A DNA stretch of 64,000 nt from the NCBI GenBank assembly GCA_002104945.1, contig MCFH01000033.1, positions 496,001 through 560,000 on the forward strand, written 5' to 3'. The position numbers were made by a program, and so were the translations under genes. Below the pieces are notes generated by a model. It made no database searches, had not been told where the DNA came from, and was given only the letters and a program-made list of their open reading frames with translations. Positions 1-57,800 of the stretch are shown here, piece after piece. This DNA comes from Piromyces finnis finn. Lineage: Eukaryota; Fungi; Neocallimastigomycota. The first letter of the stretch is position 1. The number at the start of each line of letters is the position of its first letter.

Positions 1-1827
1 TTCATCAAGCATAGGAAGTGAAAAACGTTTATTCGTTGGTTCTTCATACCAATGATCCAAATCAAGACTTACACCACTTGGATCTGATGCAAGGTTTTCG
101 AAATGATCATGCCACACCTCTAGTTGTTCTTCTGTAGCAACAACTAATTCTCCATTTTTATTTTTAATTGGTTGAGCAATAAAGAAAGAATCTTTTCCAA
201 TTTTTGCAGTTTTCTTGATCCATTTCCAGGCCTTCTTAGGATTATGACTCTTCATATACTCACATCCTGTTTTAATCCAATGAAGATATTCTTGTTTCCT
301 AAATTCATTACATCTTTTGTGGATGTAATCGATGAGCTTACGGTAGATTTTAATCCTTTTAATAAATTCATCTATATCATAAATTCTTTCTTTTTTAAAT
401 CTCTTATACAACTTCATTTTGATTTTTTGAAGATTAAAAATTTGTTGTGAAATATGAAATGAAGACTTTATAACATTATTTGCTGAGGTAATACTGAGCT
501 CGTCTGCAATTGAAAAAGCAGTTGAAGTAAACTCTTTGGAAAGTTCATCTGTAGAAACATTAGGATCGTTGAATTTTGCTGAAAGTATTTGGAATTTATT
601 ATGACTGAGAATAGATTCCTTTTCCTCAATACATTTTAATCTATTCCATTTCAGAATTTTCTTAGGAACATTAAAGTCATTAGAAAAATCTTCCATAGGA
701 ATAATTTTACCATTAATAAGAAGTGGCTTATGGTCTGAAACAGGATAAAAATTATTTATAAATGATCCTGAGTGAATAAGATCTTTCATCTTCGAGTTGA
801 TAAGAGCATGGTCAATGTCGGAAGATTGATCATCTCGAGTCCAAGAGATAGTCGACCCTCTAAGCGGAAGAATTTCCAAATCTCCTAATCCATTAGTTGA
901 TAACCAGTTGGATAATTTAACTTTAGACATATTAAAATCACCAACAAGAATCGATGGATGGGATGAATGAGTTTGTAACCACAAGCGAACTTCTAACTTT
1001 GCATGATCAACATAGATGTTGTGATGACTATGAGGCATATAAACATTTCCAATCGAGCATTTGAATCTATTCCAAAGACTAAAAGTATAAATAGAAATAA
1101 TATACTTTCCAGAGAAGTTTTCAAGTGAGGCTTGACATGAGGAAGAATCGTTGCTATTATTATTATTATTAAAGTCATCGTTATTAATGGATGATGCATC
1201 AGAGGAATAAGTAGAACTATTACTAGATGGCTGTGAAACTGAAGAACTATCAACTATTGAACTGTTATCAGAGTTGATAGAACTATTAGAATTAATTGTT
1301 GAATGTTGAGATTGAAATTGTGTTTGCTGTAGATCTGGAATATTTTCATGATGGGAAACTTGTTGAAGATCCTGTTGAAGATCTAGTTGAAGATCGGATT
1401 GTTGATGAGATTGTTGAACTGATTGTTGAAATGATTGTTGAATAGAATGTTGATGTTTATTAGAAACTAAAATTTTACGTTTGAGAGTGGAAAAAGTGTA
1501 TTTGTGATTCCTTCTACTACGAGCTGAAAAGGAAATTGAGGTAACTGAAAGTTTCTTCTTTAACATGTGTAAGATTTTAATACAATCTTTCGATGAACCA
1601 TGAACCTTGACTAAGAAAAAGTGATCATTGAAAGTCTGAAAATATTTAACACTAATAACTGAATTAAATTTATCTTCTAGAATAACCTCGAGTTTTTCCC
1701 ATAGCATATTTACTGACCATGATCGAATACCACGGATAAAGAAGGAGCGAATATCATCTAAGGGGATACCATAAGACCGGGTACCACGTCTGATATAATT
1801 CTTGTCTTTAATATAAAGGACTGACAT
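1..1827 (-). CDS. LINE polyprotein, N-terminal 609 codons (RRM-like domain, Q/S/N linker, partial APE endonuclease, tether); 3'-partial
   Basis: Manual translation from ATG at 1827 is open to base 1: MSVLYIKDKNYIRRG...SFFIRGI...HFFLVKV...QQSFQQSVQQSHQQS...IGNVYMP...SILVGDFN...SDIDHALIN...VSDHKPLLI...NPKKAWKWIKK...KNKNGELV...EVWHDHFENLASDP. The VY-P, GDFN, IDH and SDH-P motifs are hallmarks of APE-type retroelement endonucleases. Confidence 0.85.
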   Translation of the reverse strand, partial: MSVLYIKDKNYIRRGTRSYGIPLDDIRSFFIRGIRSWSVNMLWEKLEVILEDKFNSVISVKYFQTFNDHFFLVKVHGSSKDCIKILHMLKKKLSVTSISFSARSRRNHKYTFSTLKRKILVSNKHQHSIQQSFQQSVQQSHQQSDLQLDLQQDLQQVSHHENIPDLQQTQFQSQHSTINSNSSINSDNSSIVDSSSVSQPSSNSSTYSSDASSINNDDFNNNNNSNDSSSCQASLENFSGKYIISIYTFSLWNRFKCSIGNVYMPHSHHNIYVDHAKLEVRLWLQTHSSHPSILVGDFNMSKVKLSNWLSTNGLGDLEILPLRGSTISWTRDDQSSDIDHALINSKMKDLIHSGSFINNFYPVSDHKPLLINGKIIPMEDFSNDFNVPKKILKWNRLKCIEEKESILSHNKFQILSAKFNDPNVSTDELSKEFTSTAFSIADELSITSANNVIKSSFHISQQIFNLQKIKMKLYKRFKKERIYDIDEFIKRIKIYRKLIDYIHKRCNEFRKQEYLHWIKTGCEYMKSHNPKKAWKWIKKTAKIGKDSFFIAQPIKNKNGELVVATEEQLEVWHDHFENLASDPSGVSLDLDHWYEEPTNKRFSLPMLDE

Positions 1828-2020
1828 GATAATAAATTCTAATTAAAAATATTGAATATAAAATAAATACTAATAAAAATTATAAATATAACGTATATGG
1901 AAAAAAAATCTGTCTCTCTCTCTCTTCTTAAAAGTACTGGATAGTACAAAAATTGTTACGATGCTTTGTTTAAAGTTTCTTTTTTTTTTGAATTCTAGTT
2001 GTAAATTTTCTTTAAAAATT

Positions 2021-2361
2021 CTAGTTTTGGTTTGTTGTTAGTAAATTCGAATCGCTTTTTGACACTAAACTTGTTTGACTTTACTTTTCATTAAATATTT
2101 AAATTGGTAAAAAATTTGAATCAAGAATGTCGACACCAGAAAGCTTGTGAATAGTATTTTTACATGATGTAGAGTGAATCAGTCTCTTACAAGAAACAAT
2201 ACAACAATAGCTACATGAATATAAAAGTACAATGCAAATGCTAAAGTTGACTACATTGGATTCTTACAAGAGAAGAGTAGTACTACATGAATACATGAAT
2301 AAAAGAAAAAATACAGCAACAAAATGTATTACTCTTCTAATTAAATACTATACAAACTTAC
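2021..2361 (-). other. candidate spliceosomal intron in the 5' UTR of the LINE-like element
   Basis: Minus strand shows a CAG|GTAAGT donor (intron starts 2361), a TACTAAC branch site (2043-2037) and a CTAG acceptor ending at 2021, 16 nt after the branch motif. There is no transcript evidence. Confidence 0.45.
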
Positions 2362-2426
2362 CTGAAAAATCAAACATTCACTTATTCATCAAATACTTAA
2401 ATTTGATGAATAAAATGTTTTTTAAT

Positions 2427-2892
2427 CGCTCAGTACCATGAGCTTAGTCCTAATAATTTTCCCTTGAAGACTAACCAAGCATCCATTGCGCAATGCTTGG
2501 ATTTAATTCTTTCTACTCTCTCAGTACCATGAGCATGAGTAGACCCCCTTGAGAAATTACATTTATTAAATAAATGAAGGCACATTCCTAAGAGGGCACC
2601 AAGCATCCATTGCGCAATACTTGGATTTAATTCTTTCTACTCTCTCAGTACCATGAGCATGAGTAGACCCCCTTGATATCTTTCTACTCTCTCAGTACCA
2701 TGAACATGAGTAGACCGCCTTGAGAAATTACATTTATTAAATAAATGAAGGCACATTCCTAAGAGGGCACCAAGCATCCATTGCGCAATACTTGGATTTA
2801 ATTCTTTCTACTCTCTCAGTACCATGAGCATGAGTAGACCCCCTTGAGAAACTACATTTATTAAATAAATGAAGGCACGTTCCCAAGAGGGA
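2427..2892 (-). repeat. tandem array of ~124-bp structured monomers (about 3 units, an extra ~47-bp partial copy and a variant terminal unit)
   Basis: CCAAGCATCCATTGCGCAAT recurs at 2475, 2599 and 2770 (spacing 124 and 171). CTCAGTACCATGA recurs 5 times. Each unit contains three inverted repeats. Confidence 0.95.
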
Positions 2893-3901
2893 AGTATAAA
2901 ATATTAACAATTTATAAAATGTTCAACAATTTTATTACTGTTATTAATTAAATGTCTATTGTCAAACCATTTACAATAATTGGAAAAAGATAAAAAATAA
3001 AACACACCAGTAACTCTTTTTTTTTTTAATTTTATTTTATTATTTATTTTTTTATATATTAAACTTTTTTATACATATTTTATTTTCTTTTATATTAAAT
3101 TAAAATATTTAGAATATAATATCCTCTCTTCTAAAATATTATATCTATTATAAATTAATTCTCAAAAAGATACTAATAATTTTATATAAAAAATTTTTAA
3201 ACTTATAAAATTTACAAATGAATATAAAAATATATTATATAATAAAAAAAAAAGATAGGTTATGTTATAATAAATGTTATATTCGTTATTAATTTTTTAT
3301 ATATATAAAAAATATTAATTATTATTTGGAACTTTTTTTCTAATTTTATGATTTTTAATGAATGATTCAAAGAAAAATATATAATTATTCAATTATACTT
3401 TTTTCTTCTTTGTTTGTTCATTTTTTTTTTTTTGTTACTCATAATATTCTATTGATTTTTGAATTACTATTTAAATACAAAAAAATTGAACTTTGGAAAT
3501 TGAACTTTTTTTTCTATATTGGTTTTGGTTTGTGGTTCGTTTTTTGGAATTAATAAATTAATTTTTTTATCAGGCTTTATGATTAGGATTATATAATGGT
3601 ATAAAAATAATAATTTTCATTTTAAATTTATAAATTCTTTTTAGCCTTGACATTTAGTGTTTGTATGTTAAAAAAAATGTGTGGTTTTTTGAATTATAAA
3701 TGGAACTTTGTTACTGCTTTTTTTATTCTTACTTTATATAGTTACAATAAAAAAAATATTTTTCTTATTTCTTTTGGGTTGGTATTTATATTTTTTTTCT
3801 TTTTGATGTTTTAATTTCTTATGTCAATGTTAATGTGTTTTTTTTTTTTTTTTAATCATTATTTTAAATTTTATAAATGAAATTTAAAATAATTTTTCTA
3901 T

Positions 3902-6900
3902 CTAATTAGCATAAGCCATAGCAATAGCGAATTGACCAGAGTGGCTGATAGTAACCTTAACATCATTAACACCAACAGACTTAATCTTGTCTTTTAATTC
4001 TTGACTTAAAAGAACCTTTGGAGCACCAGATTCAGCCATAACAACTTCAATGTCCTTTAATGGAGCACCAGCACCTTCCCAGATCTTTTGAGCTTCTAAT
4101 GAATATGAGGAAATAGCCTTAATAACGGCTTCCTTAGCAGCCCATCTACCGGCAAAGCTAGAGCGAGCATCTGGTTTGCTCTTACAGTAATTTATTTCAG
4201 TTGAAGTAAAGTTGCGTTCTACGAAACTTTCATTTTCAATATTTATTTCAGAAATTAAAGCAACATCAACACCAACACCATTACCAACCTTAGAATCAAC
4301 AGTATTGTCGGCCATTTGCTTAAGAATAGCGTTCATAGCTTGAGTATCTTCAGTTGGGGCCTTCTTTTCGTTTTTCTTGGCGAATTGTTGTTCATAATCC
4401 CACTTCTTAGTCTTCTTGTTGTAAGAAGCACGAGCTAATGGGTTTAAGTAAACAGCACTTTCTTGTTCTGGAGTGTATGGTGGTTCATCCTTAACTTGGA
4501 CAAAGTCTTCACCAGTTAAGGTATCGTGAAGCTTTCTAAAGGCCTTGTGTTCACGGATATCACGCTTAGCCTTGTAAGCATTGTAAGTATTTTCATCAAG
4601 AGTAGCAAAGAGACAGTCTGGGTGGACAACTAAAATTTCACCACCAACTTGACCGAAACCGAATGACTTTAATAAACCAGCCTTAACACCTGGAGTCTTG
4701 AAAGTCTTGTTATTGAACCAAAGATGTTCATACTTTTCAAGAAGTGGATCAATGTTATCAGCATTACGGTTACCTGGAACAATACCAGTTTGAAGAATTT
4801 GGATAACACCATTTAACATCCAAGCAGCAGCAGCACCCTTACCGTGACCAGTAAGATACTTTTGACAAACTACTGGACAAGCGTTACCCTTAGTACGACC
4901 AAGATGTTCGAATTGCTTGTTGAATACATCAGATTCATTCTTATCATTGGCCTTAGTACCAGTACCGTGGAAGGAAGCAACACCAATATCATCAACAGTA
5001 AGACCAAAGGCAGCTAAAGCACCACGTAATGGAGAAATAGTTGGATCATTCTTGTAGAATTCTTGTCCCCAAACTTGGAAGGCTTCCTTTTCTTGCTTAC
5101 GAGCTTCAGCATCAATGAAAGCAGTTCTTTCTTCAATAAAGGCATCAATAACTTCTTGAGATTCGCCTTCCATATCCTTAACTTCTTCATTCATTAATTC
5201 TAATTCTTCTTCAACCCATGACTTAATCCATCTCTTACGAGCATTTAATTGACGAGCACGATACTTTGGATTTAATAATGGACTCTTACCATTTCCAACT
5301 TCACGAGCAGTGGTTAAAATACCTTGACCTGGAGCTGGAACAGATCTTCCTTCCTTATCGGTAGCAGTAGCACTGTGAGCAATAATACCGTAAATTGGAA
5401 CACCCATCTTAAGAGCAAGGCTAGCTGGCATTAAAACTTGTGTACCAACACCTTGAGCTTCCATGAAACCACCACGAGAGGAGGCAGTTGGTCTAGACAT
5501 TTCATCTGGTTCACGACCCTTAGCCATTTCTTCACGAGAGTTGGAAGTAGCCTTCATTTGAGCAAATTCATATGAACCTTCTTCTTGGAAGTCATCATAA
5601 CCACCAACAAATACAACCTTAGCCTTACCAGATAAAATGGTGTCAATACCAATATCAAGAGATTCAACAGCAGAAGCACAAGCACCAACTGGAGTACGAA
5701 TTGGACCAGAGGAAGAAAGTAATAATAAGTTAATCCAAGCACTCATGGTATTAACGAAAGTTTCTTGGAGAATATCACTTTGAAGTGGCTTATCTAAGAA
5801 ACGATCCTTGAAGATAGCACGGTTAGCGATTTCAGCACCAACACCAGAACCACAAGCATTTCCGACTTCGGAAACGTGAACATATTCGTAGAATTCATAT
5901 GGATCAGTAATACCAGCACTAACTAAAGCTTCAACGGCTGATACAATACAGTAACAAGTAATGATATCAACTTGTTCAATGATATCCTTTGGAATACCAT
6001 AACGAGCTGGATCCCAACCAGTTGGTAATTGACCAGCAACTAAACGATCAAATTGTAAAGCCTTAGCAACATAGATTGAAGCTCCCTTTAAGATACGAAC
6101 CATGTAACGACCATCTCCAACTTCGTAAACTTCAACATTTTCTTCGTGTTGACGCTTGAAGGTTTCAGCTTCTTCCTTACTAGCTTCGAATGGTGGAAGA
6201 TCAGTATCAACCATAACTTCTTGAAGGAACTTCTTCTTTTCTGGGTTGTAACCATTGAAAAGTTCTGGTTCAATAAGACGAATACCAGTGTGAGCAAGAA
6301 TGTCCTTTTCATAAGTAGCCTTAATATCAATATCCTTAATTGGAGCACCACTCTTAGCATCTACCCAACCAGAGTAGAGAGTACCATCTGGCATTTGCTT
6401 GAAGGTTACATGCTTAATGAATCCCATAATCCAAGCTAATTCAACACAACCTTCAAGAGAGAATTTACCTTCAGCTTCCATTTCCCAACGAGTACGGCAG
6501 TTACCGTATGGACCAACTTCACCATAACCAGTAACAACAACAACACGGTCAAGATCTAATAAGTCGCGTAAGTATTCCATGTCCTTTAATTGTTCACGAC
6601 TCTTTAATTCTGGGAATTCAATACGAATGTTAGAACGTGGTTCAACAGTTCTCTTTTCTTCAACCTTGTTAGCACCAATAATTTCAGTGTGAGCCTTATC
6701 TTCATCAATGACTAACTTCTTCTTTTCAGATTCATTAACCATCTTTTCACGAATTTGACGAAGAGCAACATTCATATCAGCCATGTATTGCATACCACCG
6801 TTAAGATCAGCGTAAATTGGGTTCTTACGAGAAAGAGAAACCATAACATCACTAACAAGACCAATGATGTTAAATGCCATTTCAGTAGTAGTGAAAGTAC

Positions 6901-9900
6901 GGCAGTTACCAACACTTTCAATACCTTCAGAGATGAGGTTATTACTGTTCATTAAACCAGTACCTCTAGTCCAACCAATACAAGCACCAGTAATGGATAA
7001 GTACTTAGACCAGGTTTCAGATCTCCAACGGTTTAATAAGTTTTCTAAACCAATCTTAGATTCACCATATAAACCATCACCACCGAATGTACCATGGTTT
7101 GGAGAAAGTGGAAGAATAACTTGGGCAGAAACAAGAGAACGAACCTTCATCTTTTGAGTACGGATAGCACCTAAAATACGAATGACGTTAGTTAACATAA
7201 TACGATGAGCTAATTCACTCTTGCCATCTAAATCACTAATATCACGACCATTTTCAGAGATAGCAGCAAATGGAATAACTAAATCAAGATCCCAACCGAG
7301 ACCGTTGGAACGACTATCCTTAGAGTAAATGAATTCAATAAGATCATTAACATCCTTCTTAGAACCTTGGTTGAATGGAACAACAACTAAGGCAGAACCC
7401 TTAGTACCAACTTGTTCATAAACACTTCTAAAGTGTTCTAAAGTCTTACGACGGTAACTAGAAGTAGTAGCAACAACCTTAGCACCACCAGCTAAGAGGT
7501 ACTTAACAACACATTCACCAATAGAGTTTCTACCACAACCAGTAATAAGAACATGCTTACCAGCGAATGAAATACCATCTTCAGCAATCTTCTTAAGTTC
7601 ATTTAAGTAAACCTTAGACATAGCTTCATCAATGTTATCGACACCATTAGCAGCTTGGTCACGAACAAAGAGGTATGGAACCTTCTTAGTAATAGAACCA
7701 ATAGTTTGCATGGCACCATCTTCCATTTCCTTAACATAGTCAGAAGATGTTTCAATACCCTTACGTGGAACTTCCTTATAAATCATTTGACCTTGTTCAT
7801 CAATAATGGCATGTGGAGCTTGGAATGGACCATTGAATTTAAAGATTGGTTTTCCAGAAGACTTTTCAATTTCTTCTAATAAAGCAGCAGTAACCTTTTC
7901 TAATGTAGCCTTGATTTCAGCATCCTTTTGATCAGCAACAACCTTCTTGTGAACAAATTCAATTTGTTGACGAAGAGAATTGTTGGCACGATTAACCATA
8001 GTACGGAAGAGATCGGAAGAAATGATAGCATCAGCATCCTTCTTTTCTCCAGCAAGAATATCATAGACCATGAACCAGAAGTCTTGGTAACCCCAGTTCC
8101 AGCTAGAGTCAAAGACACGAGCCTTCATGCTACTGAACATTGGCTTAATACCATTAGCATAATCTTCACCATGTTCTTCAAACCAAATATCAAGATCAGA
8201 TTGAAGCTTAGCAGTAGATTCAGCAGAAGCAACTAATTTCTTTTGATCTTCACGAAGATCAACACCAAGGTACTTAGCGTAAGTTTCTAATTGTTCACGA
8301 ATAAGTGAATCTTGCTTCATTCTTAAAGCAGTAACTTCAGCACTGTTAACCATACCCATGGCAGCAACACCTGGAACAGCAGCAGCAACAGCACCACCAG
8401 CACCACCCTTAGAAAGACCAAGAGAGTTAGCACTGGAGTAAAGTTCAACAGCCTTATCTAACCAGGCTTGTGCATCAGCTTCAGAACCTAAACGTGAAGA
8501 TGGTTCAATAGTGGTACTGTAAAGTAATACACCATCGGTTCTTCTTTCACCTAAACCATAGCTACTCTTAAGATATTCCTTAGCCTTAGAAGCAGAGAAA
8601 CCAGCTGGCATCTTACCACTAAGCATACGGTTAACCATAGTAGATGTGTATTTACCTAACTTACCACTGTGGTTAGCACCAATAGCACTACCTAATTCAC
8701 TAATGGCTAATTCTTCAGCCTTTAATGGAATACTATTACCACCAAATTCAGTGTGTAAATCACCAGATACTTCATTTTGAACAGTACTACGTCCACCAGA
8801 TAATTCCTTAATAGACTTACTCATTGGAATTTCGTTAATAGTCTTCTTTAATTTTTGAGCTAACATTACACGAATAATTTCATTTGGAGCAATTGGAGCA
8901 TCACCAACAGCAGCAGCTGGAGCAGCTGGAGCAGCAGCAACTGGCATAGCTACTGGCATAGCTACTGGAGCAGCAGCAGCTGGAGCAGCAGAACCCTTTG
9001 AAATAGAAACACCAGTGGCAGAAGAATAAGTACTAACTACAGAATCTAACCAAGCTTGAGCATCAGCTTCAGATCCTAAACGAGAGGATGGTTCCATGGT
9101 AGTAGCAACTAATAAAACACCATCAGTACGACCCTTTCCAAGACCATAACTGTTAGCTAAATAGTTCTTTACAGCAGATGCGTTGAAACCAGCTGGCATC
9201 TTACCACTAAGCATACGATTAATCATTTGAGTAGTGTACTTACCAAGTGAACCATTGAAGTTAGAAGAAATTTGCTTACCAAGATCTTCTAAAGATAATT
9301 CTTCAGCCTTTAATGGAATACTATTACCACCAAATTCAGTGTGTAAATCACCAGAAACTTCATTTTGAACAGTACTACGTCCACCAGATAATTCCTTAAT
9401 AGATTTTGTCATTGGAATTTCGCTGAGAGACTTCTTTAATTTTTGAGCCAAGATAACACGAATAATTTCAGAAGCAGTAACTGGGGCATCACCAACAGCA
9501 GCAGCTGGGGCAGCAGCAACTGGAGCTGGAGCGGCAACTGGGACTGGAGCTGGGACTGGAGCTGGAGCAGCCTTTGGAGCTTCAACTGGAGCTGGAGCTG
9601 GAGCAGCTTCTTCTTCTTCAAAGTTCATATCATCTAATTCATAGTAAATTTCAGCAGTATCCTTAGAGTAAGCTAAAAGTTGACGCTTCTTACCAAGAGC
9701 AAGATCAGATTTACTGTAATTCTTGGCAAGAGTACGTTTAGCCATACCAACTAAAGTTGGAGTTGGACCAAATTCAATTAAACGTTCAATATCAACACCA
9801 CCCTTCTTAGAGGAGTTGAATAAGTATTCTTGAGTCTTAATCCATTGAACAGCAGAAGCTAATTGGTAAGATAATAATTCAATCATAATAATGTATGGAA

Positions 9901-12900
9901 TTTCTAATAAATGTTGATCCCATTCTTCAATAATCTTTTCCAAGTAGGTTGAGTTGGTACGCTTTTGAAGGCGAATGGCATAATCCTTTTCAACAGAGAA
10001 TGGTTCACCCATTAAGTTTGGAATGTAACGACCAACAAGGCACTTAACATCAACATCTTCCTTACGAACACTCTTATGAAGTAATTCACGGAAGGTTGGA
10101 ACACCCCATAATAAGTATGAAGAGTGGAATGGAACATCAATACCACGAAGTGGAATTGTAGCAGCACCTCTTTCAATTTGGAACCATTTTTCCTTAGCCT
10201 TACGTTCTTCAGCTAATTTAACATAATAAGTAATCTTTTCATTAACAAAGTCCATAGCTTGGTCAGCATCTTCCTTGTATAAAGAGATAAACTTCTTAGC
10301 TTCAGCACGAAGATTAGTTAATAAGTTCTTAAGAGCTTCAAGACTAACAAGATCACCAGTAGCAACATATTGGAAGTCTTCAACATTATAGTTAACAATT
10401 TCTAAAAGTCCACCATGTTCATTGTTAATCTTCTTAACAACTTCAACAAGTAAATCGAATGAGAAGTATGGGTGAACACGAACTGGATTAACAGCACACA
10501 TAGCATAATCGGAACGGTTTAATTCATCTCTTTCAACAGATGATTGCATAACAAGACCACGGTAGAATACAATTTCAGTCATACTTTCAATACTTAAAGT
10601 ATTGGCGACACAAGAAAGAGCAGCATATTCACCAAGAGAGTGACCAGCGAAAACAGCATCATCACAAATGTAACCATTTTCAAGCATATCTTCAAAAGCA
10701 GCTCTTTCAGTAATAGTAATAGCTGGTTGGGTGAATTGGGTGGCATTTAATAAACCGTTTGGTGATTTGTATTCATAGTAAAGAGTGTTTTCATCAATAT
10801 CTGGGAAAATACGCTTAGTTTGAACCTTTCCGTTAGAATCAATAATTTCACAAGTCATCTTGATGTAATTTTCTCTAATCTTTTCACCTTCTTCACCACC
10901 AAAGTAGACAGTAAGTGATTTTGGATTAGTACGAACAATTTCAAGAATTGAGTAACCATACTTCTTCATTAAGAAGGAATCAGCTCTATCCCAAACAGAC
11001 TTGGCAACACTAGATTTGTTGTATAAGTCTTGACCCATACCAACTTCTTGGGCACCTTGACCAGTAAAGACATAAGCAGTTGGCTTTTGCTTAACTTCAG
11101 CTTCACCTTCCATAACAGTTTCATTGGTACGTAAGTCCTTAACAGAAACCTTAATGATCTTTCTACCATTGTGCATACCAACATGAGTAAGAGTAGTCTT
11201 AAGTTCATCCTTTGGTGAAACCATACCAATGAAATTGACCTTGTAAGAAACAACACGTTCAGCACAATTATCAGCAGCATAGGTTTCAACGTAACGACGA
11301 GTAGCAGCACTAGTCCACATACCATGAGTAATTGGAACATCAAGATCAGCTAAGTTAGCAAAGTAGAAGTTAGTGTGAATTGGGTTAACATCACCAGAAG
11401 CAAGAGAGTAATCTTCATTAGTGTTTGGAGCACGTTGGAGAAGAGAAACACCCTTTGGAAGAATGTTGTAACCACCATTTTCAAAGTAAATCTTACGATC
11501 ATTAGCCTTAGCGTACTTCTTGATAAATTCAATAGCTGGGTTACCAAGAGTAGTTTCATTACCTTCTAACTTTTCATCAGTAGTACTGTCATAGTTGAAT
11601 TGACCAACTTCTTCCATTTGGAATCCATGGACAGCGCTATTATTAATGTAAATCTTACCCTTAGTAGTAATGCTACTGTAAGTAGTCTTAGTAGCGAAAC
11701 GCTTTTCAGTCTTTAACTTGAAGACTAACTTAACACCAATTTGAATCTTTTCTGGTTCAGTGAAAGAAACGTATTGACGAGTCATTAAAGCATTTAAGAT
11801 ATTTTCATCCTTAACTTCAAGAATGTATTCTGGTTCTTCACGGATGTTGAAAGTCATGTTGTAGTCATCAAACTTACCACGACATAAGAAACTACTGGTA
11901 ACCTTAACGTATTCCTTACCTTCTCTGAATACATGACCAGTAACTTCAATTAACTTACCGGAATCAAGGTTAGTAACAGCAGAAATGATAGAACGAGTAT
12001 CAACAACTTCTCCAACCTTTAATGGACGTGGGTCAACAACTTCGTAACCATTGTTCATATGGACTAAACGAGTAATATCGGCATCAAATTCCTTGGCGAA
12101 AATAGTCTTGAAGACAGAAACCCAAGAAGTAACAATAATAAAGTCCATAGATGGAACAAGCTTGTTAGATGGATGAGTGTAACGAGTAACGTCAGAGAAG
12201 AACTTAACATCTTCTTCAGTAACACGCTTCTTACACTTGTAAATGGTAGTAAGATCACCCCAACCATCACCAGAATCTTCTGGACCATACCATAATTTAT
12301 AGTAAAATTCAGCAATACGCTTGTTACGTCCTTCCATAACTTCATGGATTGGAGTACTACCTTGTTCTGGAGTGTAACGGAAGAGAAGTCTCATAACTTC
12401 AGCACCAGCAACACCTGGAACACCCCATTCACGTAAACCAACAGTAATAACGCGTTGATCATCAATTTCAGCTTCAAGAGCTGGGAGTTCCATACTACGG
12501 TTCCATCCAAAGATTTCAATCTTAGTAATATCACCCTTAGTATCGTGGAAGATCTTAACAATTTGAGAAGTACGTGGCTTAAAGACACGCTTGAAACGGT
12601 TGTGAGTGGTAGATTTGTTACGAGCAATAGTTGGAGTACATAATAAAGCTCTTAACCATCCATACTTTGGACCAGCCATGAATTCAATCCATTCCTTAGT
12701 ATCTGGTAATTGATCTTCTTGGTCTGGAAGAGTGTAAATCATAGTATTACCATCCTTTTCAACCTTAACATTGTCTGGAACTACAGAAACTTCAGCTGGG
12801 ATTGGAGTACCACCAAGATATTCAACTTCTGGAACTGCACGGTTGGCATAGTAACGAGATTCAATAGACTTAATGTGACTCTTAATAATTCCATCTAAGA

Positions 12901-15900
12901 TATCCTTGACTGGTTGGTTAACAATCTTAGAGTGACGGATAGCTACTGGACCTTGTAAAATAGCAACACGTTGTGGATCTTGGTCAACAACGGCATCTAA
13001 ATCTTCGGCTTGCCATAAACTATCACGCTTTAACCAAACGTGGAATTCTTCATCAAGAACACTAATGAATGGTGGTGGCTTTCTGTCCTTGTTACGAGTC
13101 AAGCCAATCAAGTATTGAACATCTTCAGTAGCTAATAATTCAGTACGAGCACCTGGAGCACGAGTATCAAAGAATTCCTTCATTAAAGCAACTGGGTCTT
13201 CAACAGCAAGGGATTGTGGGCTTTCAAGGAAAGTTGGAGTGTTTGGATCATTAACAAAACGTTCTTCAGTACGGTAAATGAAATCAGCAGTAGTCTTCAT
13301 GTGACTAACATCTAACCATTGCTTACGCTTTTGAACGAAAAGTAATTCAATTAAACGAAGGATAACTTGTTCATAAGTCATTTCTTCAATATCACATGGA
13401 GTACCATCAGCCTTCTTACCAAACCAAACCTTTTGGAAGTCCTTGTTAAGACGATCGATAATGTAATCCTTCTTTTCTAAGAGCTTGGCTAATCTCTTCT
13501 TTGGGTCTTGAATGGAGAAAATAGTTTGATCTAATTCCTTCCAGAACATAACACCACGAGTAGCAATCTTGTGGATTGGTTCACCATATTCAGAATCAAC
13601 AGTAACAACACCACCAACTGGGTGATCATAAGACTTTTCCCATTGAGATTGATCTTCAATACCTGGAGTGTTAACAATAACTTCCTTAATTCCGTCAGAA
13701 GTAAGAGCTTCCTTAGCAACACAAACACGAGAACCAACTAATAAACCATCAAATGGCATTGGTGGGTAACCAAGTTCAATACTCCAGTCACCAGTAATGA
13801 ATGGAAGAGTTTCAACATCATCACCAAAACCGGAACCAACAACAACAACAATGTTGGATTGTTTACGTAAAGCTGCATAAGTTTCAAGAATTGGAGCGTA
13901 AAAGTCTTCACAAGAGTGGTGACCACCACTACGACCACCAGTCCATTCAACAATAATTGGCATATCTGGGAAAGTACGAGCAATTTGAATAACCTTCATG
14001 ATAGTATCACGATTTCCTGGCTTAAAACCAATGTATGGAATACCAGCATCTTGAAGTTGTGGAATCATTTTCTTACAATATTCAAGAGATGGAACACCAG
14101 CGGCAATAGTAATACCTTCAATACGAATTCCACGATTCTTACGCATATCTAAAACAGCTGGGAATTGGAAGGCCCAAAGACGTTGATTTAAAAAGACAAT
14201 GTTACAAAGCATACCTTCACCATCTGGAATCTTCTTAACAATTTCATCAATACATTTATCTAAAACTTCTGGGGCGTATAAAGCACCACAACCGATTTCA
14301 ACATTGTAACCAGCATTGACAACAGCAGAAACAAATTGTGGGTTAGCAGTAGTTGGGGTCATACCACCAACAAGAAGAGGTGGACGACCAGTTAAACGTG
14401 AGTAACGAGTATCCATTAAAAGTTCACCATCGGCATTCTTAATAAGCTTTGGAGCAAATTCTTTAGCCCAGTTAATACCGTATGGTAAATCAGTAAGTTC
14501 AGTAGTGTAAGCATACATCTTACACTTCAAGTCTGGGTTAGTACTAGCAATAGTACCAGAAAGAATAACTTGAACACCAGTACCTTCTTTGTTCTTTTGA
14601 ATAAGAGAACCAATACCAGAAGCACCACCTGGTCCAAAATCTAAAACATGAGTTAAACCTGGAACATTAGTTGCCTTAACCCAATCAACTGGTAAAATAC
14701 AGATTTGGTTAACAACAGATTCAACAACATCAGAAACTTCAGTTTCTTCCTTCATATCAACACCATTGTCAGTACGGTAAACTGGAATAGCTAACTTTTC
14801 AGTTGGGAAAGAAATGTTAAATTTAGCAGCATCTTCAACAACAAGTTGAGCAGCATCCTTTAAGATTTCATTGTGAGCTGGAATAGTAACTGAAAGGAAT
14901 TTCATGGTGAAGATTTGCTTTCTCTTAGAGAATGGAATACGTGATTGATCTTCGTTTGGACCAGCTTGGATTTTCTTAAGAGACATCTTAAGATTTTGAA
15001 GAGATTCTGGAGCACCAGTAACAACAATCATACGAAGACCGTTAATAAGAGAGATAGTAACCTTACGAGAAGTGTTTTCAATGAAACCATTTAATTCATT
15101 AACTTTTTGACGAACAACGGCTTCTGGTAAACCGTTAATAGAAAGCATACAAGTTGGCATATCATTTTCATCATTATTTTCAGCAATTTCATGTAAAGTT
15201 TCTGGAGATAATGGAGTAATAGCAAAGATTTGTTGTGAGCGAGCACCAATTAAGAATAAAAGAGAAACAGCTTTCTTTGAGTTTTCTAAGTATTCTTCTT
15301 CGGTACCAGAAGAAGCAATAACCACAGAAGTAACTAAACCTTGAGAATGACCAGTAGTACCAGCGAATAAACGACGAGCCCAATCTGGAGTCTTACGGAA
15401 AGTGCGGAAAAGAATTAAGTATTGAACTAATTGAACAATACCAATTAATGGGAAGGAAACTGGAGCAGAGTCAAGGTAAGCATTTTCTGGAAGAGATTCT
15501 GGATTACGTAACCACTTTAAAATATCAAGACCTTGTTTGTAAGTACGTTCAAATTCTGGCTTAGAAGCTAAATCCTTTAAAACAATTGAAAGTTCAGCAA
15601 TATAATCACGAACGATAGCACCATAGATAGTGTAAGCTTGAAGGATTTCGTTGAAACCTGGGTAACCTTGACCACCGAAAACAGCAAGGGCAAGGGCATC
15701 ACCAGCACGAACAGCCTTAGCTAAAGCTGGTTCAATTGGTAAGAAATTAGCAATAGCATTTGAGGCTTCTTCATCCTTTTGTAAATAATCGAAAACGGTG
15801 TAGAAATGTTGAATAACTTGAATACGGTATTCATGATCAAAATGACGAGTTCTAATATGAATATCGTTACCCTTAAGGAAACGAGAACTAAAATCAATAA

Positions 15901-16324
15901 ATAAATTAATTAATAAACCAGTAATATCCTTTTGAGTTAAAAGAGTCTTATTATCGGCTTGGTAACGAGTGGAAAATTCCATGAAGTTAATGTAAATCCA
16001 GAAACCATTTAAAGTATTTTTCTTTTCAATATCTTCTTCATCAGAAGCAAAAGTATTTTCAAATGAAGAATTGAAATCATAAGCAATTTGTTCAGCACAA
16101 GACCAGTTTTCTTCTGGAATGTGAATAGTGAACTTAAAGTTTTCAATGATTTTATCAAAAACTAATAAACGAGTGGAGTTGCTTTCAATTTTAGATTCGG
16201 CAACTGGAGCTTCAGCAGCAACTGAGGCTTCAACCTTAGCAACATTCTTTTGGTTCTTAAGAACCTTTGGAGATACAGTAGTAGTGTTTTCTGTATCTGG
16301 TTCAATAGTAGAGATAGCACCCAT
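3902..16324 (-). CDS. FAS: single-chain fungal type I fatty acid synthase (beta+alpha fusion): AT-ER-DH-MPT-ACP-ACP-KR-KS-PPT
   Basis: Intronless 4140-aa ORF with AT GHSQG, ER GGHHS, DH SGDVNPIH, MPT GHSLGEY, two ACP GGRSTVQNE, KR PNHGTFGGDGLYGESK, KS TPVGACAS / FHGTGT / GHGKGA, and PPT GVGVDV...RWAAKEA. Confidence 0.98.
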   Translation of the reverse strand: MGAISTIEPDTENTTTVSPKVLKNQKNVAKVEASVAAEAPVAESKIESNSTRLLVFDKIIENFKFTIHIPEENWSCAEQIAYDFNSSFENTFASDEEDIEKKNTLNGFWIYINFMEFSTRYQADNKTLLTQKDITGLLINLFIDFSSRFLKGNDIHIRTRHFDHEYRIQVIQHFYTVFDYLQKDEEASNAIANFLPIEPALAKAVRAGDALALAVFGGQGYPGFNEILQAYTIYGAIVRDYIAELSIVLKDLASKPEFERTYKQGLDILKWLRNPESLPENAYLDSAPVSFPLIGIVQLVQYLILFRTFRKTPDWARRLFAGTTGHSQGLVTSVVIASSGTEEEYLENSKKAVSLLFLIGARSQQIFAITPLSPETLHEIAENNDENDMPTCMLSINGLPEAVVRQKVNELNGFIENTSRKVTISLINGLRMIVVTGAPESLQNLKMSLKKIQAGPNEDQSRIPFSKRKQIFTMKFLSVTIPAHNEILKDAAQLVVEDAAKFNISFPTEKLAIPVYRTDNGVDMKEETEVSDVVESVVNQICILPVDWVKATNVPGLTHVLDFGPGGASGIGSLIQKNKEGTGVQVILSGTIASTNPDLKCKMYAYTTELTDLPYGINWAKEFAPKLIKNADGELLMDTRYSRLTGRPPLLVGGMTPTTANPQFVSAVVNAGYNVEIGCGALYAPEVLDKCIDEIVKKIPDGEGMLCNIVFLNQRLWAFQFPAVLDMRKNRGIRIEGITIAAGVPSLEYCKKMIPQLQDAGIPYIGFKPGNRDTIMKVIQIARTFPDMPIIVEWTGGRSGGHHSCEDFYAPILETYAALRKQSNIVVVVGSGFGDDVETLPFITGDWSIELGYPPMPFDGLLVGSRVCVAKEALTSDGIKEVIVNTPGIEDQSQWEKSYDHPVGGVVTVDSEYGEPIHKIATRGVMFWKELDQTIFSIQDPKKRLAKLLEKKDYIIDRLNKDFQKVWFGKKADGTPCDIEEMTYEQVILRLIELLFVQKRKQWLDVSHMKTTADFIYRTEERFVNDPNTPTFLESPQSLAVEDPVALMKEFFDTRAPGARTELLATEDVQYLIGLTRNKDRKPPPFISVLDEEFHVWLKRDSLWQAEDLDAVVDQDPQRVAILQGPVAIRHSKIVNQPVKDILDGIIKSHIKSIESRYYANRAVPEVEYLGGTPIPAEVSVVPDNVKVEKDGNTMIYTLPDQEDQLPDTKEWIEFMAGPKYGWLRALLCTPTIARNKSTTHNRFKRVFKPRTSQIVKIFHDTKGDITKIEIFGWNRSMELPALEAEIDDQRVITVGLREWGVPGVAGAEVMRLLFRYTPEQGSTPIHEVMEGRNKRIAEFYYKLWYGPEDSGDGWGDLTTIYKCKKRVTEEDVKFFSDVTRYTHPSNKLVPSMDFIIVTSWVSVFKTIFAKEFDADITRLVHMNNGYEVVDPRPLKVGEVVDTRSIISAVTNLDSGKLIEVTGHVFREGKEYVKVTSSFLCRGKFDDYNMTFNIREEPEYILEVKDENILNALMTRQYVSFTEPEKIQIGVKLVFKLKTEKRFATKTTYSSITTKGKIYINNSAVHGFQMEEVGQFNYDSTTDEKLEGNETTLGNPAIEFIKKYAKANDRKIYFENGGYNILPKGVSLLQRAPNTNEDYSLASGDVNPIHTNFYFANLADLDVPITHGMWTSAATRRYVETYAADNCAERVVSYKVNFIGMVSPKDELKTTLTHVGMHNGRKIIKVSVKDLRTNETVMEGEAEVKQKPTAYVFTGQGAQEVGMGQDLYNKSSVAKSVWDRADSFLMKKYGYSILEIVRTNPKSLTVYFGGEEGEKIRENYIKMTCEIIDSNGKVQTKRIFPDIDENTLYYEYKSPNGLLNATQFTQPAITITERAAFEDMLENGYICDDAVFAGHSLGEYAALSCVANTLSIESMTEIVFYRGLVMQSSVERDELNRSDYAMCAVNPVRVHPYFSFDLLVEVVKKINNEHGGLLEIVNYNVEDFQYVATGDLVSLEALKNLLTNLRAEAKKFISLYKEDADQAMDFVNEKITYYVKLAEERKAKEKWFQIERGAATIPLRGIDVPFHSSYLLWGVPTFRELLHKSVRKEDVDVKCLVGRYIPNLMGEPFSVEKDYAIRLQKRTNSTYLEKIIEEWDQHLLEIPYIIMIELLSYQLASAVQWIKTQEYLFNSSKKGGVDIERLIEFGPTPTLVGMAKRTLAKNYSKSDLALGKKRQLLAYSKDTAEIYYELDDMNFEEEEAAPAPAPVEAPKAAPAPVPAPVPVAAPAPVAAAPAAAVGDAPVTASEIIRVILAQKLKKSLSEIPMTKSIKELSGGRSTVQNEVSGDLHTEFGGNSIPLKAEELSLEDLGKQISSNFNGSLGKYTTQMINRMLSGKMPAGFNASAVKNYLANSYGLGKGRTDGVLLVATTMEPSSRLGSEADAQAWLDSVVSTYSSATGVSISKGSAAPAAAAPVAMPVAMPVAAAPAAPAAAVGDAPIAPNEIIRVMLAQKLKKTINEIPMSKSIKELSGGRSTVQNEVSGDLHTEFGGNSIPLKAEELAISELGSAIGANHSGKLGKYTSTMVNRMLSGKMPAGFSASKAKEYLKSSYGLGERRTDGVLLYSTTIEPSSRLGSEADAQAWLDKAVELYSSANSLGLSKGGAGGAVAAAVPGVAAMGMVNSAEVTALRMKQDSLIREQLETYAKYLGVDLREDQKKLVASAESTAKLQSDLDIWFEEHGEDYANGIKPMFSSMKARVFDSSWNWGYQDFWFMVYDILAGEKKDADAIISSDLFRTMVNRANNSLRQQIEFVHKKVVADQKDAEIKATLEKVTAALLEEIEKSSGKPIFKFNGPFQAPHAIIDEQGQMIYKEVPRKGIETSSDYVKEMEDGAMQTIGSITKKVPYLFVRDQAANGVDNIDEAMSKVYLNELKKIAEDGISFAGKHVLITGCGRNSIGECVVKYLLAGGAKVVATTSSYRRKTLEHFRSVYEQVGTKGSALVVVPFNQGSKKDVNDLIEFIYSKDSRSNGLGWDLDLVIPFAAISENGRDISDLDGKSELAHRIMLTNVIRILGAIRTQKMKVRSLVSAQVILPLSPNHGTFGGDGLYGESKIGLENLLNRWRSETWSKYLSITGACIGWTRGTGLMNSNNLISEGIESVGNCRTFTTTEMAFNIIGLVSDVMVSLSRKNPIYADLNGGMQYMADMNVALRQIREKMVNESEKKKLVIDEDKAHTEIIGANKVEEKRTVEPRSNIRIEFPELKSREQLKDMEYLRDLLDLDRVVVVTGYGEVGPYGNCRTRWEMEAEGKFSLEGCVELAWIMGFIKHVTFKQMPDGTLYSGWVDAKSGAPIKDIDIKATYEKDILAHTGIRLIEPELFNGYNPEKKKFLQEVMVDTDLPPFEASKEEAETFKRQHEENVEVYEVGDGRYMVRILKGASIYVAKALQFDRLVAGQLPTGWDPARYGIPKDIIEQVDIITCYCIVSAVEALVSAGITDPYEFYEYVHVSEVGNACGSGVGAEIANRAIFKDRFLDKPLQSDILQETFVNTMSAWINLLLLSSSGPIRTPVGACASAVESLDIGIDTILSGKAKVVFVGGYDDFQEEGSYEFAQMKATSNSREEMAKGREPDEMSRPTASSRGGFMEAQGVGTQVLMPASLALKMGVPIYGIIAHSATATDKEGRSVPAPGQGILTTAREVGNGKSPLLNPKYRARQLNARKRWIKSWVEEELELMNEEVKDMEGESQEVIDAFIEERTAFIDAEARKQEKEAFQVWGQEFYKNDPTISPLRGALAAFGLTVDDIGVASFHGTGTKANDKNESDVFNKQFEHLGRTKGNACPVVCQKYLTGHGKGAAAAWMLNGVIQILQTGIVPGNRNADNIDPLLEKYEHLWFNNKTFKTPGVKAGLLKSFGFGQVGGEILVVHPDCLFATLDENTYNAYKAKRDIREHKAFRKLHDTLTGEDFVQVKDEPPYTPEQESAVYLNPLARASYNKKTKKWDYEQQFAKKNEKKAPTEDTQAMNAILKQMADNTVDSKVGNGVGVDVALISEINIENESFVERNFTSTEINYCKSKPDARSSFAGRWAAKEAVIKAISSYSLEAQKIWEGAGAPLKDIEVVMAESGAPKVLLSQELKDKIKSVGVNDVKVTISHSGQFAIAMAYAN
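8405..9495 (-). repeat. internal tandem duplication of the ACP domain within FAS (period 588 nt = 196 codons)
   Basis: Two copies of GDAP..EIIRV.LAQKLKK...KSIKELSGGRSTVQNEVSGDLHTEFGGNSIPLKAEEL...GKMPAGF...EPSSRLGSEADAQAWLD, each preceded by an Ala/Pro-rich linker. Confidence 0.95.
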
Positions 16325-54874: not shown

Positions 54875-57800
54875 TTATTCTTCAAAACTGTCATCACTAT
54901 TATTATCAGATTCATTATCGGTAGCTCCGTGTTGAATTAATAAATCTATGATAGCATAGTTTTTCTTATATTTGGCAATAGATAAAGCAGTTTCACCTTG
55001 GTTACTTTCAATATCAAATTTTACGTTTTTATCGAGGAGAAGTTTTACAATACTTTCATGTTCGTTGAAACATGCCATCATAAGAGCAGTGTTACCATCT
55101 GTATTCTTGTTATCTAATTCAATTTTTTCCTTTTCTATATTAAGTAACATTTCAACAATAGCTTGGTAACCATTGAAACAAGCCATCATTAATGGGGTAT
55201 TGTCGTTCTTATCCTTAACATTTGGATTAGCTCCATGATCTAAAAGATTTTGAGCAATTTTACTATGACCATTGAAACATGCTAAAGTCAAAGCGGTATC
55301 GTTTTTCTTATTCATGACATTAACATCAGCATTATTTTCTAATAAAAGATCAACAATGCTTCCATAACCACGTTCAGATGCACGGATTAATGCAGTATCA
55401 TGAATTGCGTTTTTGATATTAATATTAGAATTGGCTTTAATTAAAGCTTTAACAATGTTAGTATAACCTTTATTACAAGCTAAGATAAGGGCTGTATTCT
55501 TAAAGTTATTCATTTCGTTAACATTTGCACCTCTTTCTAATAAAGCATTAACAATTGATTCGTAACCACTTGCACTTGCAACGATTAAAGCAGTATTACC
55601 ATATTTATCTAAAGTATTAACATCAGCATTATGATCTAATAAAAGTTGGACAATTTCCTTATCGCCATTTTGAGAAGCATAAATTAAAGCAGTATTCTTT
55701 TTTCTATCTTTAACATTAATATTTCCAATTTGCTTTAATAAAGATTCAATTGTTTTAACTTCTCTCTTTTTAACAGCACTAATAAAAGCCATGTTGTTCT
55801 TTTTGTTAATGTTTTGTAATAATTCAACAATTGGTTCAAAACCTCTTTCAGCAGCAATATCTAAAGCAGTTGAATCTTCAACATTCTTAATATTAACATT
55901 AAGTTCCTTATCATCAAGAAGAATCTTAACAACATTTTCGTGACCATTAAGACATGCCATCATAAGAGCGGTATTACCATCAATATTTTGGTTGTTAATT
56001 TGAAGTGGATTACCCTTGGCAGCCATTTTTTCCTTAACACTTAAAAGTACTTCAACAACCTTGATATGACCATTGAAACAAGCCATCATTAAAGCAGAAT
56101 TTTCATTTTCATCTTTTTCATTAACGTTAACATCATGTTCCAATAACATTTCTACAATTTCTGGGTAACCAATATAACAAGCAAGAGTGAATGCAGAATC
56201 ATTATTCTTATTCTTAATGTTAACGTCTGGATTCTTACTTAATAATAATTTGACAACTTCAATGTGTCCATTAGCACTAGCACGGATTAAAGCATTATCG
56301 TTCTTAATGTTAACAATGTTGACATTAGCATCATACTCGAGAAGAATAGCAGCAATATTGTCTAAACCCTTGTTACTTGCTAATATAAGTGCAGTGTTAC
56401 CATATTTATTCTTAGTATTGACATCAGCAGAATTTTCTAATAAATAACGAGTTAATTCTTCATTGCCATTACCAGCAGCAAGAATAATTGGAACATTACC
56501 ATATTCATCCATAGCATTAATATTAGCACCGTTTTCAATTAAAATCTTAGCTAATTCATAATCATTAATTTGACAAACATAAACAAGAGCGTTATTGATT
56601 TCAATTTGAATTTTTTCAAGTGGAATTTCCTTCATCTTAGAAAGAGTAGCTTCAACGGTTGGAATATCTCTTTCTTTTATAGCAGTTAAGAATGTAGAGG
56701 TATCACCTTCTTTGACTAAATGCAATAATTCAACAATATTTTTGTAATCCTTTTCACCAGCAATTTCTAAAGCAGTTTCATCTTCATTATTCTTGATATT
56801 AATATTAACATCACTATTATTAATTAAAATTTCTACAACCTTTTCATGACCATTGAAGCAAGCCATCATAAGTGCAGTATTACCATCAATATTTTGAGCG
56901 TTGACATTAATATTATTACCTTTTTTTAATAAAAGTTCTACAATATTCTTGTGACCATTGTAACTTGCCATCATTAATGCAGTATTTTTGTTTTCATCAA
57001 TAATTTGAAGGTCGGCATCATGATTTAATAATAATTCAACAATATCTTCATAGCCAATGAAACAAGCTAAAGCCATTGGTGTATCATTTTTCTTGTTAAT
57101 AACATTAACGTTGGCATTATTGTTGAGAAGCATTTCAACAATAGTTTTGTGACCGTTAGCACAAGCACGTAAGAGAGCGGTATCTCTTCTTTTATTTTCA
57201 ATGTTTGGATCAGCCTTGTTATTAATAAGAAGATCAGCAATTTCTATGTATCCTTTATTACAAGCTAAGATAAGAGCAGTATTTTTGTAGTTATTCATTT
57301 TGTTAATTTCAGCGCCATTTTCAATTAAAAGCTTTACAATTGATTCATGACCATTAGCAGATGATATAATAAGAGCGGTGTTTCCATAGATATCAGTTGC
57401 GTCAATGTCTGCTTCGTTTTCAATTAATAACTTTATAATTTCTTCATTTTCATTTTGACAAGCATAAATAATAGCGGAGTTGCCTTCTTCATCTTTTGCA
57501 TCAATATCTGATATTTTTTGTAATAATTGCTTAACAGTTTCAGTCTTATTATGTTTACTAGCTGAGATAAAGGAAAGAGTACATTTATCATCAATATCTT
57601 GTAATAAGTTAGCAATACTTTCAAAGTTTCTTTCTTGAGCAATTTCAAGGGCAGTTTCTCCATTTTCATTTTCTAAATTGATATTAGCATTATATTTTAA
57701 AAGAGTTTGAACAGCTTTTTCATGTCCATTGTAGCAAGCCATCATTAATGAAGTATTACCTTCGGTATTACTATTGTTAATGTCAATATCTTTTCCTTCT

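Follow-up and report, generated by a model that had tools for sequence, protein, structure and literature searches.

Introduction

Only in a few LINE clades is it understood how a precise, full-length 5′ end is obtained, the answer being an HDV-like ribozyme, a twister ribozyme or an internal promoter. HDV-like ribozymes occupy the 5′ ends of R2, RTE and other LINEs, with the first helix starting at the processed end (PMC3774820). Pr77, a sequence-conserved module of 77 nt that forms the HDV-like ribozyme L1TcRz, begins at nucleotide 1 of different retroelement families, namely L1Tc, NARTc and ingi (PMC3383444, PMC3185411, PMC4035085), and L1TcRz cleaves at the C1 that opens its P1 helix with three G-C pairs (PMC3185411). 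Perere-3 carries 5′ twister-variant ribozymes, a non-HDV class in LINE 5′ processing, and loop-loop pseudoknots occur in such modules (PMC8501958). Where monomers stand in tandem at a LINE 5′ end, their classical role is that of a promoter, as in mouse L1 (PMC9022269). The A, Tf and Gf monomers of mouse L1, of ~200 bp, are arranged head-to-tail before a non-repeated 'tether' UTR and function at the DNA level through sites for factors such as YY1, conservation of an RNA fold not being known for them (PMC9022269, PMC11602158).

Here we analyse a 64-kb stretch of DNA (the window; contig MCFH01000033.1, assembly GCA_002104945.1) from Piromyces finnis, a member of the Neocallimastigomycota, the anaerobic gut fungi, whose mobile elements are almost unstudied. 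On the minus strand of the window a LINE opens with tandem copies of a ~124-nt unit, here called the head. We conclude that the head is a genuine structured RNA module of the 5′ end, as yet without a name and amplified in tandem, in which shape is conserved rather than sequence; its probable role is to generate or protect the 5′ terminus of the element's RNA.

Results

A tandem array forms the 5′ end of a LINE with an intact ORF

The original prediction placed tandem units of ~124 nt on the minus strand, and three head-to-tail units followed by a degenerate one were located there. The features of the array and of the element behind it are listed below; coordinates are window positions unless a locus is named, and L001 is the locus that continues past the window start.

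2384-2891, minus strand: head array, three full units and a decayed unit, 5′ of an intact LINE ORF of 1320 aa
2768-2891, minus strand: monomer 1 (head type W), the element's first unit, 124 nt; 156 bits against covariance model (CM) R1
2597-2767, minus strand: monomer 2, a full unit enlarged to 171 nt by an internal duplication of 47 nt
2473-2596, minus strand: monomer 3, 124 nt
2384-2472, minus strand: degenerate terminal unit, a weak match to CM R1 (19.1 bits, E=0.009)
2892-2899, minus strand: flank at the element's 5′ end, the 8-nt TTATACTT, found again after the 3′ UTR at L001 28793-28800
2140-2335, minus strand: 5′ UTR core, sequence-conserved and common to all ten related LINE families examined
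1-1827, minus strand: first 609 codons of the LINE ORF, which continues past the window start (full ORF of 1320 aa, L001 24498-28460)

Read along the minus strand from 2891 to 2473, the full units measure 124, 171 and 124 nt, the 47-nt duplication in monomer 2 comprising the H1 3′ strand and H2 of the fold described below. The degenerate unit (2384-2472) has lost the H1 5′ strand and the pseudoknot partner, and a long AU-rich hairpin occupies the position of H3. It retains the CUCA-UGGUAC-UGAG hairpin, which is the H2 apex, so the predicted persistence of the UGGUAC loop in this divergent unit (2472-2384) holds. The array is followed by ~560 nt of unique, non-repeated UTR and then by the LINE ORF, which is intact and contains an RT domain; this order identifies the array as the 5′ end of the LINE. 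A target-site duplication was sought around the element, and nothing was found beyond the one 8-mer TTATACTT, a weak candidate for such a duplication.

Summed contig depth in the genome's own DNA run was 1.3e5-5.5e5 over window positions 1-3000 and ~130-850 over 3001-4500, falling from ~1.8e5 in bin 2851-3000 to ~280 in bin 3001-3150 (monomers ~1e5, flank ~2e2). Many contigs of this run break at 2891-2893, where similarity had been predicted to stop at the base of H1. Together, the step in depth and the breaks indicate that the monomers are part of a high-copy family whose outer edge lies at the first C of H1. Joints from 2891 to 2775 and from 2891 to 2518 also occur, in contigs from which copies cannot be counted, and suggest that arrays with a slightly different, shorter junction are present elsewhere in the genome. 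An ordinary local satellite, or target-site DNA lying beside the LINE by chance, is scarcely credible: the repeats are tandem, nearly identical and without a second copy in the 64-kb window, yet their depth equals that of the high-copy LINE and drops at the outer edge of the array, and homologous heads stand at the 5′ ends of related LINEs between unrelated flanks. On this depth boundary and on the heads at other LINE 5′ ends, we rejected classification as a satellite in the usual sense of a repeat untied to a mobile element.

Two RNA-like runs placed the upstream fatty acid synthase (FAS) gene at 370-590, the intergenic bin 3001-3150 at 1.5-8 and the monomer bins at up to 6077 and 1908, with contigs spanning 1983-2525; as contigs, these data are silent on strand, 5′ ends, cap state and which copies are expressed. 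The FAS gene, on the same strand as the LINE (window 3902-16324, minus), is a single ORF of 4140 aa encoding a fused fungal type I FAS with beta and alpha subunits and a phosphopantetheinyl transferase in one chain. Elsewhere in the window, an ORF of 1200 aa (54875-58477, minus) consists almost wholly of ankyrin repeats, with a 99-nt periodicity in the DNA.

Each unit folds as three adjacent hairpins on the sense strand

A single unit folds as three adjacent hairpins, H1 to H3, with the following helices in monomer 1.

2891-2880 with 2850-2839, minus strand: H1
2871-2866 with 2860-2855, minus strand: inner hairpin
2838-2832 with 2813-2807, minus strand: H2
2828-2825 with 2818-2815, minus strand: H2 inner stem
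2795-2787 with 2778-2770, minus strand: H3
2874-2878, minus strand: 5′ strand of the pseudoknot, GUGCC, in the internal loop on the 5′ side of H1; pairs with GGUAC of the H2 apical loop, 2819-2823

These helices had been proposed from the sequence, and the coordinates of H1, H2, H3, GUGCC and GGUAC all proved correct on checking. So did the proposal that the minus-strand RNA, which is the LINE sense strand, is the better folder: the sense strand reaches -42.9 kcal/mol (z=-5.4, none of 200 shuffles as good) and the antisense strand -29.8 kcal/mol (z=-2.8). The three units differ at five positions only. A double change from C-G to U-A and two changes that wobble pairing tolerates keep the fold, and a G-to-A change in units 2 and 3 disrupts one H1 pair (A.C). 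The compensatory H1 pair of the original prediction, C/G against U/A at 2879/2852, is thus present, but the A.C mismatch had been overlooked, and covariation within the window carries no statistical weight and proves nothing because there are only three near-identical copies.

The first ~13 nt of every head type form a self-complementary run, CCC(C)-N3-7-GGG(G) (window 2891-2879, minus strand; from L036 434, L033 22, L002 359, L003 181, L025 47 and L016 784). This opening run could fold back into a mini-hairpin in competition with the long-range H1, and might act as a switch, as a fold-back primer on the cDNA 3′ end or as a protein site. At the other end of the unit, the H3 loop GCRCAAUG (window 2770-2795, minus strand, and equivalents) is shared by types W, H, G and B, on stems that are unrelated to one another. 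The window copy sits inside a perfect 10-bp DNA palindrome, ATTGCGCAAT; at the RNA level the palindromic core of the loop could support loop-loop dimers.

Structurally equivalent heads open other LINE families

LINE families related to that of the window (38-64% aa identity), drawn from other assemblies and from gut metagenomes, begin at their first nucleotide with one structurally equivalent head. The heads represent about six independent lineages, all the relatives coming from short contigs. The types besides W are as follows.

Type H, L036 434-544: H1 CCCUCGG with CCGAGGG; H2 loop UGGUAC; H3 loop GCACAAUG
Type G, L033 22-168: H1 UCCC..CGAGGG with CUCUCG..GGGA; H2 loop CGGUGU; H3 loop GCGCAAUG
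Type B, L002 359-452 and L024 152-245: H1 CCCUCCGG with CUGGAGGG; H2 loop GUGCGG / GUACGG; H3 loop GCGCAAUG on an unrelated stem
Type C, L003 from 181, L006 from 1127 and L031 from 724: H1 starts CCCC; H2 loop CAGUAC; H3 loop not conserved
Type D, L025 from 47: H1 starts CCCC; H2 loop CAGUAC; no clear H3

A further head, type F (L032 85-190, also L016), starts CCCC and contains an internal tandem duplication of ~50 nt, so duplication within heads is not peculiar to the window family. Wherever several copies or a long flank exist, and hence independent insertions can be compared, similarity sets in exactly at the first C of H1. Across types only the terminal CCC/GGG and, in four of six types, the H3 loop GCRCAAUG are conserved as letters; no unpaired nucleotide is conserved across all six. 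The type B heads of L002 and L024 are 97% identical. The two LINEs have ORFs with 63% and 45% identity to that of the window LINE, and the UTRs downstream of their heads do not align; this argues that heads have been exchanged between families. Like Pr77, this is one 5′ module carried by different retroelement families.

Protein searches returned no LINE relatives above 65% aa identity, the closest on record being at <=64%. A protein search using the 58-aa ORF inside the monomers gave no candidate other copies, and a metagenome DNA pattern running from the H2 loop through the H3 loop gave 0 matches. A viral-contig pattern for H3 was set aside, as its 20 matches were all chance ones in which the stem is absent.

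The fold is maintained by compensatory change

Homologues of the head were recovered with covariance models, as the original prediction had recommended. CM R1, built from the window monomers alone, finds matches only with filters off and gave none with default filters; it aligned to type H (L036 433-544) over its full length (49.9 bits, E=5.7e-10). CM R2, built from W and H and searched against 82 kb on both strands with rough E-values, ranked type G first (L033, E=1.3e-4) and type B next (1.6e-3 and 0.011), and a sub-threshold match begins exactly at the type C head. Between W and H, 43 pairs are aligned with 96.8% of cells paired and 10 pairs changed on both sides, a result reached by none of 500 shuffles and set against 0-2 in slid controls, in an alignment that is fitted to the model and amounts to essentially one independent comparison. 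Type C taken alone has 97% of cells paired and two double changes, which is not significant for three sequences (118 of 500 shuffles match or beat it). MAFFT alignments across head types were structurally inconsistent and were discarded. The model-fitted alignment misplaces H2 of types G and B, and statements about H2 and the pseudoknot across types are therefore taken from per-type folds.

Strand asymmetry was seen throughout: in seven heads the sense MFE is better than the antisense by 4-15 kcal/mol, with 28 G.U pairs in sense and 7 in antisense, which points to RNA rather than to palindromes in duplex DNA. Taken together, and with covariation drawn from few independent lineages and model-fitted alignments, these data make it very probable that the head is a real conserved structured RNA. 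The original suggestion, that a new structured RNA opens the LINE, is thereby upheld, and more strongly than the window alone allowed, in that the fold, with the proposed pseudoknot, is kept by compensatory change in the heads of other LINE families and has no match in Rfam.

The same data bear on a purely DNA-level function, in which the units would be promoter modules only, as in mouse L1, and the RNA fold would be incidental to palindromic factor-binding sites. Head-to-tail monomers upstream of a non-repeated UTR are what such modules look like, and mouse L1 monomers behave in this way (PMC9022269, PMC11602158); the H3 loop also lies in a perfect palindrome whose GCRCAATG core is kept between unrelated flanks, and an autonomous LINE requires an internal determinant of its start site. 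Against this, it is the pairing that is conserved and not the sequence (10 double compensatory changes between W and H), G.U pairs favour the sense fold by 4-15 kcal/mol, the long-range loop-loop pairing covaries, and the sequence-conserved part of the UTR is a different block. Conserved pairing, strand bias and covarying loops are not expected of protein-binding DNA, and we judge a promoter-only function improbable.

A probable loop-loop pseudoknot recurs with different letters

The pairing predicted for the window unit, between the H1 internal loop (GUGCC) and the H2 loop (GGUAC), recurs with other letters at equivalent sites in five further types: GUGCC/GGUAC in W becomes GUACC/GGUAC in H, ACACC/GGUGU in G, CCGUA/UACGG in B and GUACU/AGUAC in both C and D, so that the five further types carry four different letter pairs of 5-nt complementarity. 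In the type B head of L002 the partner is UGCGG and pairing is preserved through G.U. Two of the five pairs are changed on both sides between W and G, and one is changed on one side. The probability of such pairing by chance is 0.02-0.24 per type. Fisher's test over the three independent test types, with the discovery type left out, gave a modest p=0.013 when G.U was allowed and p=1.5e-4 with Watson-Crick pairs only. When both strands of all loci were scanned automatically by MFE, 114 CCC-started H1-plus-H2 geometries emerged; such pairing was present in five, and three of these are the heads. We regard the pseudoknot as likely but not proven.

The head lacks the cores of known ribozymes

A scan of the window against Rfam 15 found nothing at gathering score. 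No Rfam ribozyme family matched at E<=10 in 1800-3100, nor at E<=5 in the seven loci with other head types; there was no Rfam 15 match to hammerhead, twister, pistol, hatchet or hairpin ribozymes, or to known xrRNA families. The absence of hammerhead, HDV, twister and pistol cores, first judged by eye, is thus mirrored in the scan, and no known catalytic core is present; the monomer reads CUGAGAG and not the hammerhead CUGANGA.

Threading of the head onto the HDV fold was tried and rejected. H1 has 8-13 bp (HDV P1 has 7), and the inner hairpin, which type B lacks, has 4-8 bp. A 3-bp P3 with L3 is missing, and no P1.1 is possible since the joint between H1 and H2 is only 0-4 nt long and not conserved. 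Types W, H, G, B, C and D have U, U, C, G, C and C, respectively, immediately 5′ of the pseudoknot 3′ strand; with no unpaired nucleotide conserved across types, the head offers no candidate catalytic C equivalent to the HDV J4/2 cytosine.

The head may nevertheless be asked whether it represents a new class of self-cleaving ribozyme that cuts just 5′ of H1 and so releases LINE RNA from read-through transcripts. Such a role has precedent at LINE 5′ ends, in the HDV-like ribozymes of R2, RTE and L1Tc and the twister variants of Perere-3 (PMC3185411, PMC3774820, PMC8501958), and the element ends exactly at the foot of H1, which is compatible with cleavage and similar to that of L1TcRz at C1. The strand order of the head matches the P1-P2-P3 order of HDV-like ribozymes, and in both the window copy and L036 a same-strand gene stands immediately upstream. 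These points are offset by the lack of an Rfam ribozyme family for any head type, even with E up to 5-10, by the missing inner hairpin of type B, by the lack of P1.1 and by the absence of any conserved unpaired nucleotide. Moreover, cleavage at each unit would strip the upstream monomers, yet arrays exist here and in other genomic contigs, and the contigs of the RNA-like runs include no read-through from the upstream FAS gene. We therefore consider a new ribozyme unlikely.

The LINE, its N-terminal domain and a conserved UTR core

The LINE ORF encodes a ferredoxin-like N-terminal domain, the C-terminal half only of an APE endonuclease, and RT. In this high-copy LINE the N-terminal ~95 residues of the endonuclease are absent, the Pfam match being restricted to profile positions 133-225, and the SWNTNGWN and QET motifs of all its relatives are replaced by S/N/Q-rich low-complexity sequence. 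The window family may rely on the nuclease of another element or on nuclease-independent insertion. The N-terminal domain (ORF residues 1-133, L001 24498-24896) is predicted to adopt a beta-alpha-beta-beta-alpha-beta fold of ferredoxin/RRM type (mean pLDDT 79, core >90); it has no Pfam match, and a fold search returned only generic ferredoxin-like matches, all above E=1e-3.

This domain raises the prospect that the head is a platform for RNP assembly, packaging or translation, bound in cis by the element's own N-terminal domain, with more copies giving more binding. The ORF does open with this conserved domain of ~100 aa, predicted as ferredoxin/RRM-type with a core pLDDT >90, the conserved H3 loop sequence suggests sequence-specific recognition, and a motif like the H1 5′ strand appears again in another leader and in the 3′ UTR. 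However, the fold-search matches are generic and above E=1e-3, the head lies 650-1060 nt from the start codon, and a platform leaves unexplained why the fold must begin at nucleotide 1. We think such a function very improbable.

Between head and ORF lies the 5′ UTR core (2140-2335), a block of ~170 nt with 28 invariant columns across the ten families whatever the head type. It contains repeated YATGTAG followed by TGATTCACTCTA, together with TTGTAAGAG and TCTTGT, and may be an internal promoter or a second RNA element. Given this separate sequence-conserved block, the head need not be the main promoter. No tRNA was found in the window or in L001, and a tRNA or Pol III head was rejected on that ground.

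Just past the window start, ~500 nt beyond the LINE 3′ UTR, L001 also carries a solo leader of another LINE type, like that of L021 (L001 28990-29700). It has a 78-nt UTR segment in common with window 1981-2058 (92% identity) and about seven YYCUYUU-GUGGAAC repeats that resemble the H1 5′ strand.

Discussion

These data allow us to propose how the head might serve the element. The head is a sense-strand fold of 95-170 nt in which the first strand of H1 begins at nucleotide 1-3 of the element (CCC...GGG). It consists of a long H1 with an internal loop on the 5′ side and usually an inner hairpin, H2 directly after it and H3 next, and the 6-nt apical loop of H2 probably pairs with the internal loop of H1 in a 5-bp pseudoknot. 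We propose that it acts in RNA as a 5′-end module, and that the foot of H1 sets where the mobile copy ends. There the H1/H2 knot would shield the end by stalling 5′-to-3′ trimming or decay of longer or uncapped transcripts, and extra monomers would stand in reserve, much as exonuclease-resistant RNAs are duplicated in flaviviruses. Part of an internal promoter may reside in the same DNA, Pr77 being the precedent in L1Tc, and a combined RNA and promoter role of this kind is possible.

A C is an unusual start for Pol II. The starting C and the coincidence of the element's end with that of a helix suggest that RNA processing or trimming, and not initiation, sets the 5′ end. If the fold stalls trimming or decay at its foot, this would account for the flush ends and also for the usefulness of extra copies. 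Against this model, to our knowledge any autonomous LINE requires a feature at nucleotide 1 that positions its start site, and tandem monomers are promoters in the classical case of mouse L1. The sequence-conserved UTR block further down is the better candidate for factor binding, and the head looks like an RNA device. Tandem copies also fit a promoter or protective role better than self-cleavage. We accordingly rank a block to trimming first, before a new ribozyme, promoter modules only and an RNP platform. The full mechanism of marking and protecting the end, as set out above, is a tentative model that we place a little short of an even chance.

It is possible, though on balance not what we expect, that the head is a new self-cleaving ribozyme class or the first xrRNA-like exonuclease-stalling fold in a cellular retrotransposon. 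Either, if true, would be a new RNA class: a portable RNA device that sets and guards the LINE 5′ end without a dedicated start site, and that is swapped among LINE families and multiplied in tandem. Tandem arrays and head-swapping illustrate the evolution of LINE 5′ ends by module capture, and the six sequence-diverged natural variants are a ready-made compensatory-mutation series.

Among described systems, the HDV-like ribozymes of R2, RTE and other LINEs resemble the head in lying at the 5′ end with a first helix that starts at the processed end. Their P1-P2-P3 order is mirrored by the H1 5′ strand, pseudoknot strand, inner hairpin, H1 3′ strand and partner strand of the head, but the partner strand lies in a hairpin loop in the head and after P4 in HDV-like ribozymes. 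Pr77, compared with the head by description and not by sequence, is likewise a short nucleotide-1 module common to different retroelement families; in both, CCC/GGG opens the first helix, the fold is pseudoknotted and the 5′ end is the base of a helix. The head differs from Pr77 in the sequence divergence among its types, its lack of HDV hallmarks, its extra H3 hairpin and its capacity to stand in tandem. The twister variants of Perere-3 are also 5′ modules with loop-loop pseudoknots, but P1 of Perere-3 is built partly from the target-site duplication, and the fungal element, which has no Rfam twister match, contains both strands of its H1.

In flavivirus 3′ UTRs, xrRNA1 and xrRNA2 are tandem exonuclease-resistant RNAs with a known ring fold and conserved nucleotides; their resistance depends on this 3D ring, which halts Xrn1 at the 5′ base. 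Like the head they are compact, pseudoknotted and duplicated in tandem, and the base of the xrRNA defines the 5′ end of the surviving RNA; the likeness is one of 2D topology alone, a pseudoknot bracing a 5′ helix, with no similarity in sequence or in Rfam. The arrangement of the array itself resembles that of mouse L1: three units and a decayed one stand head-to-tail at the 5′ end upstream of a non-repeated UTR, and in both mouse L1 and the fungal LINEs subfamilies acquire new head types.
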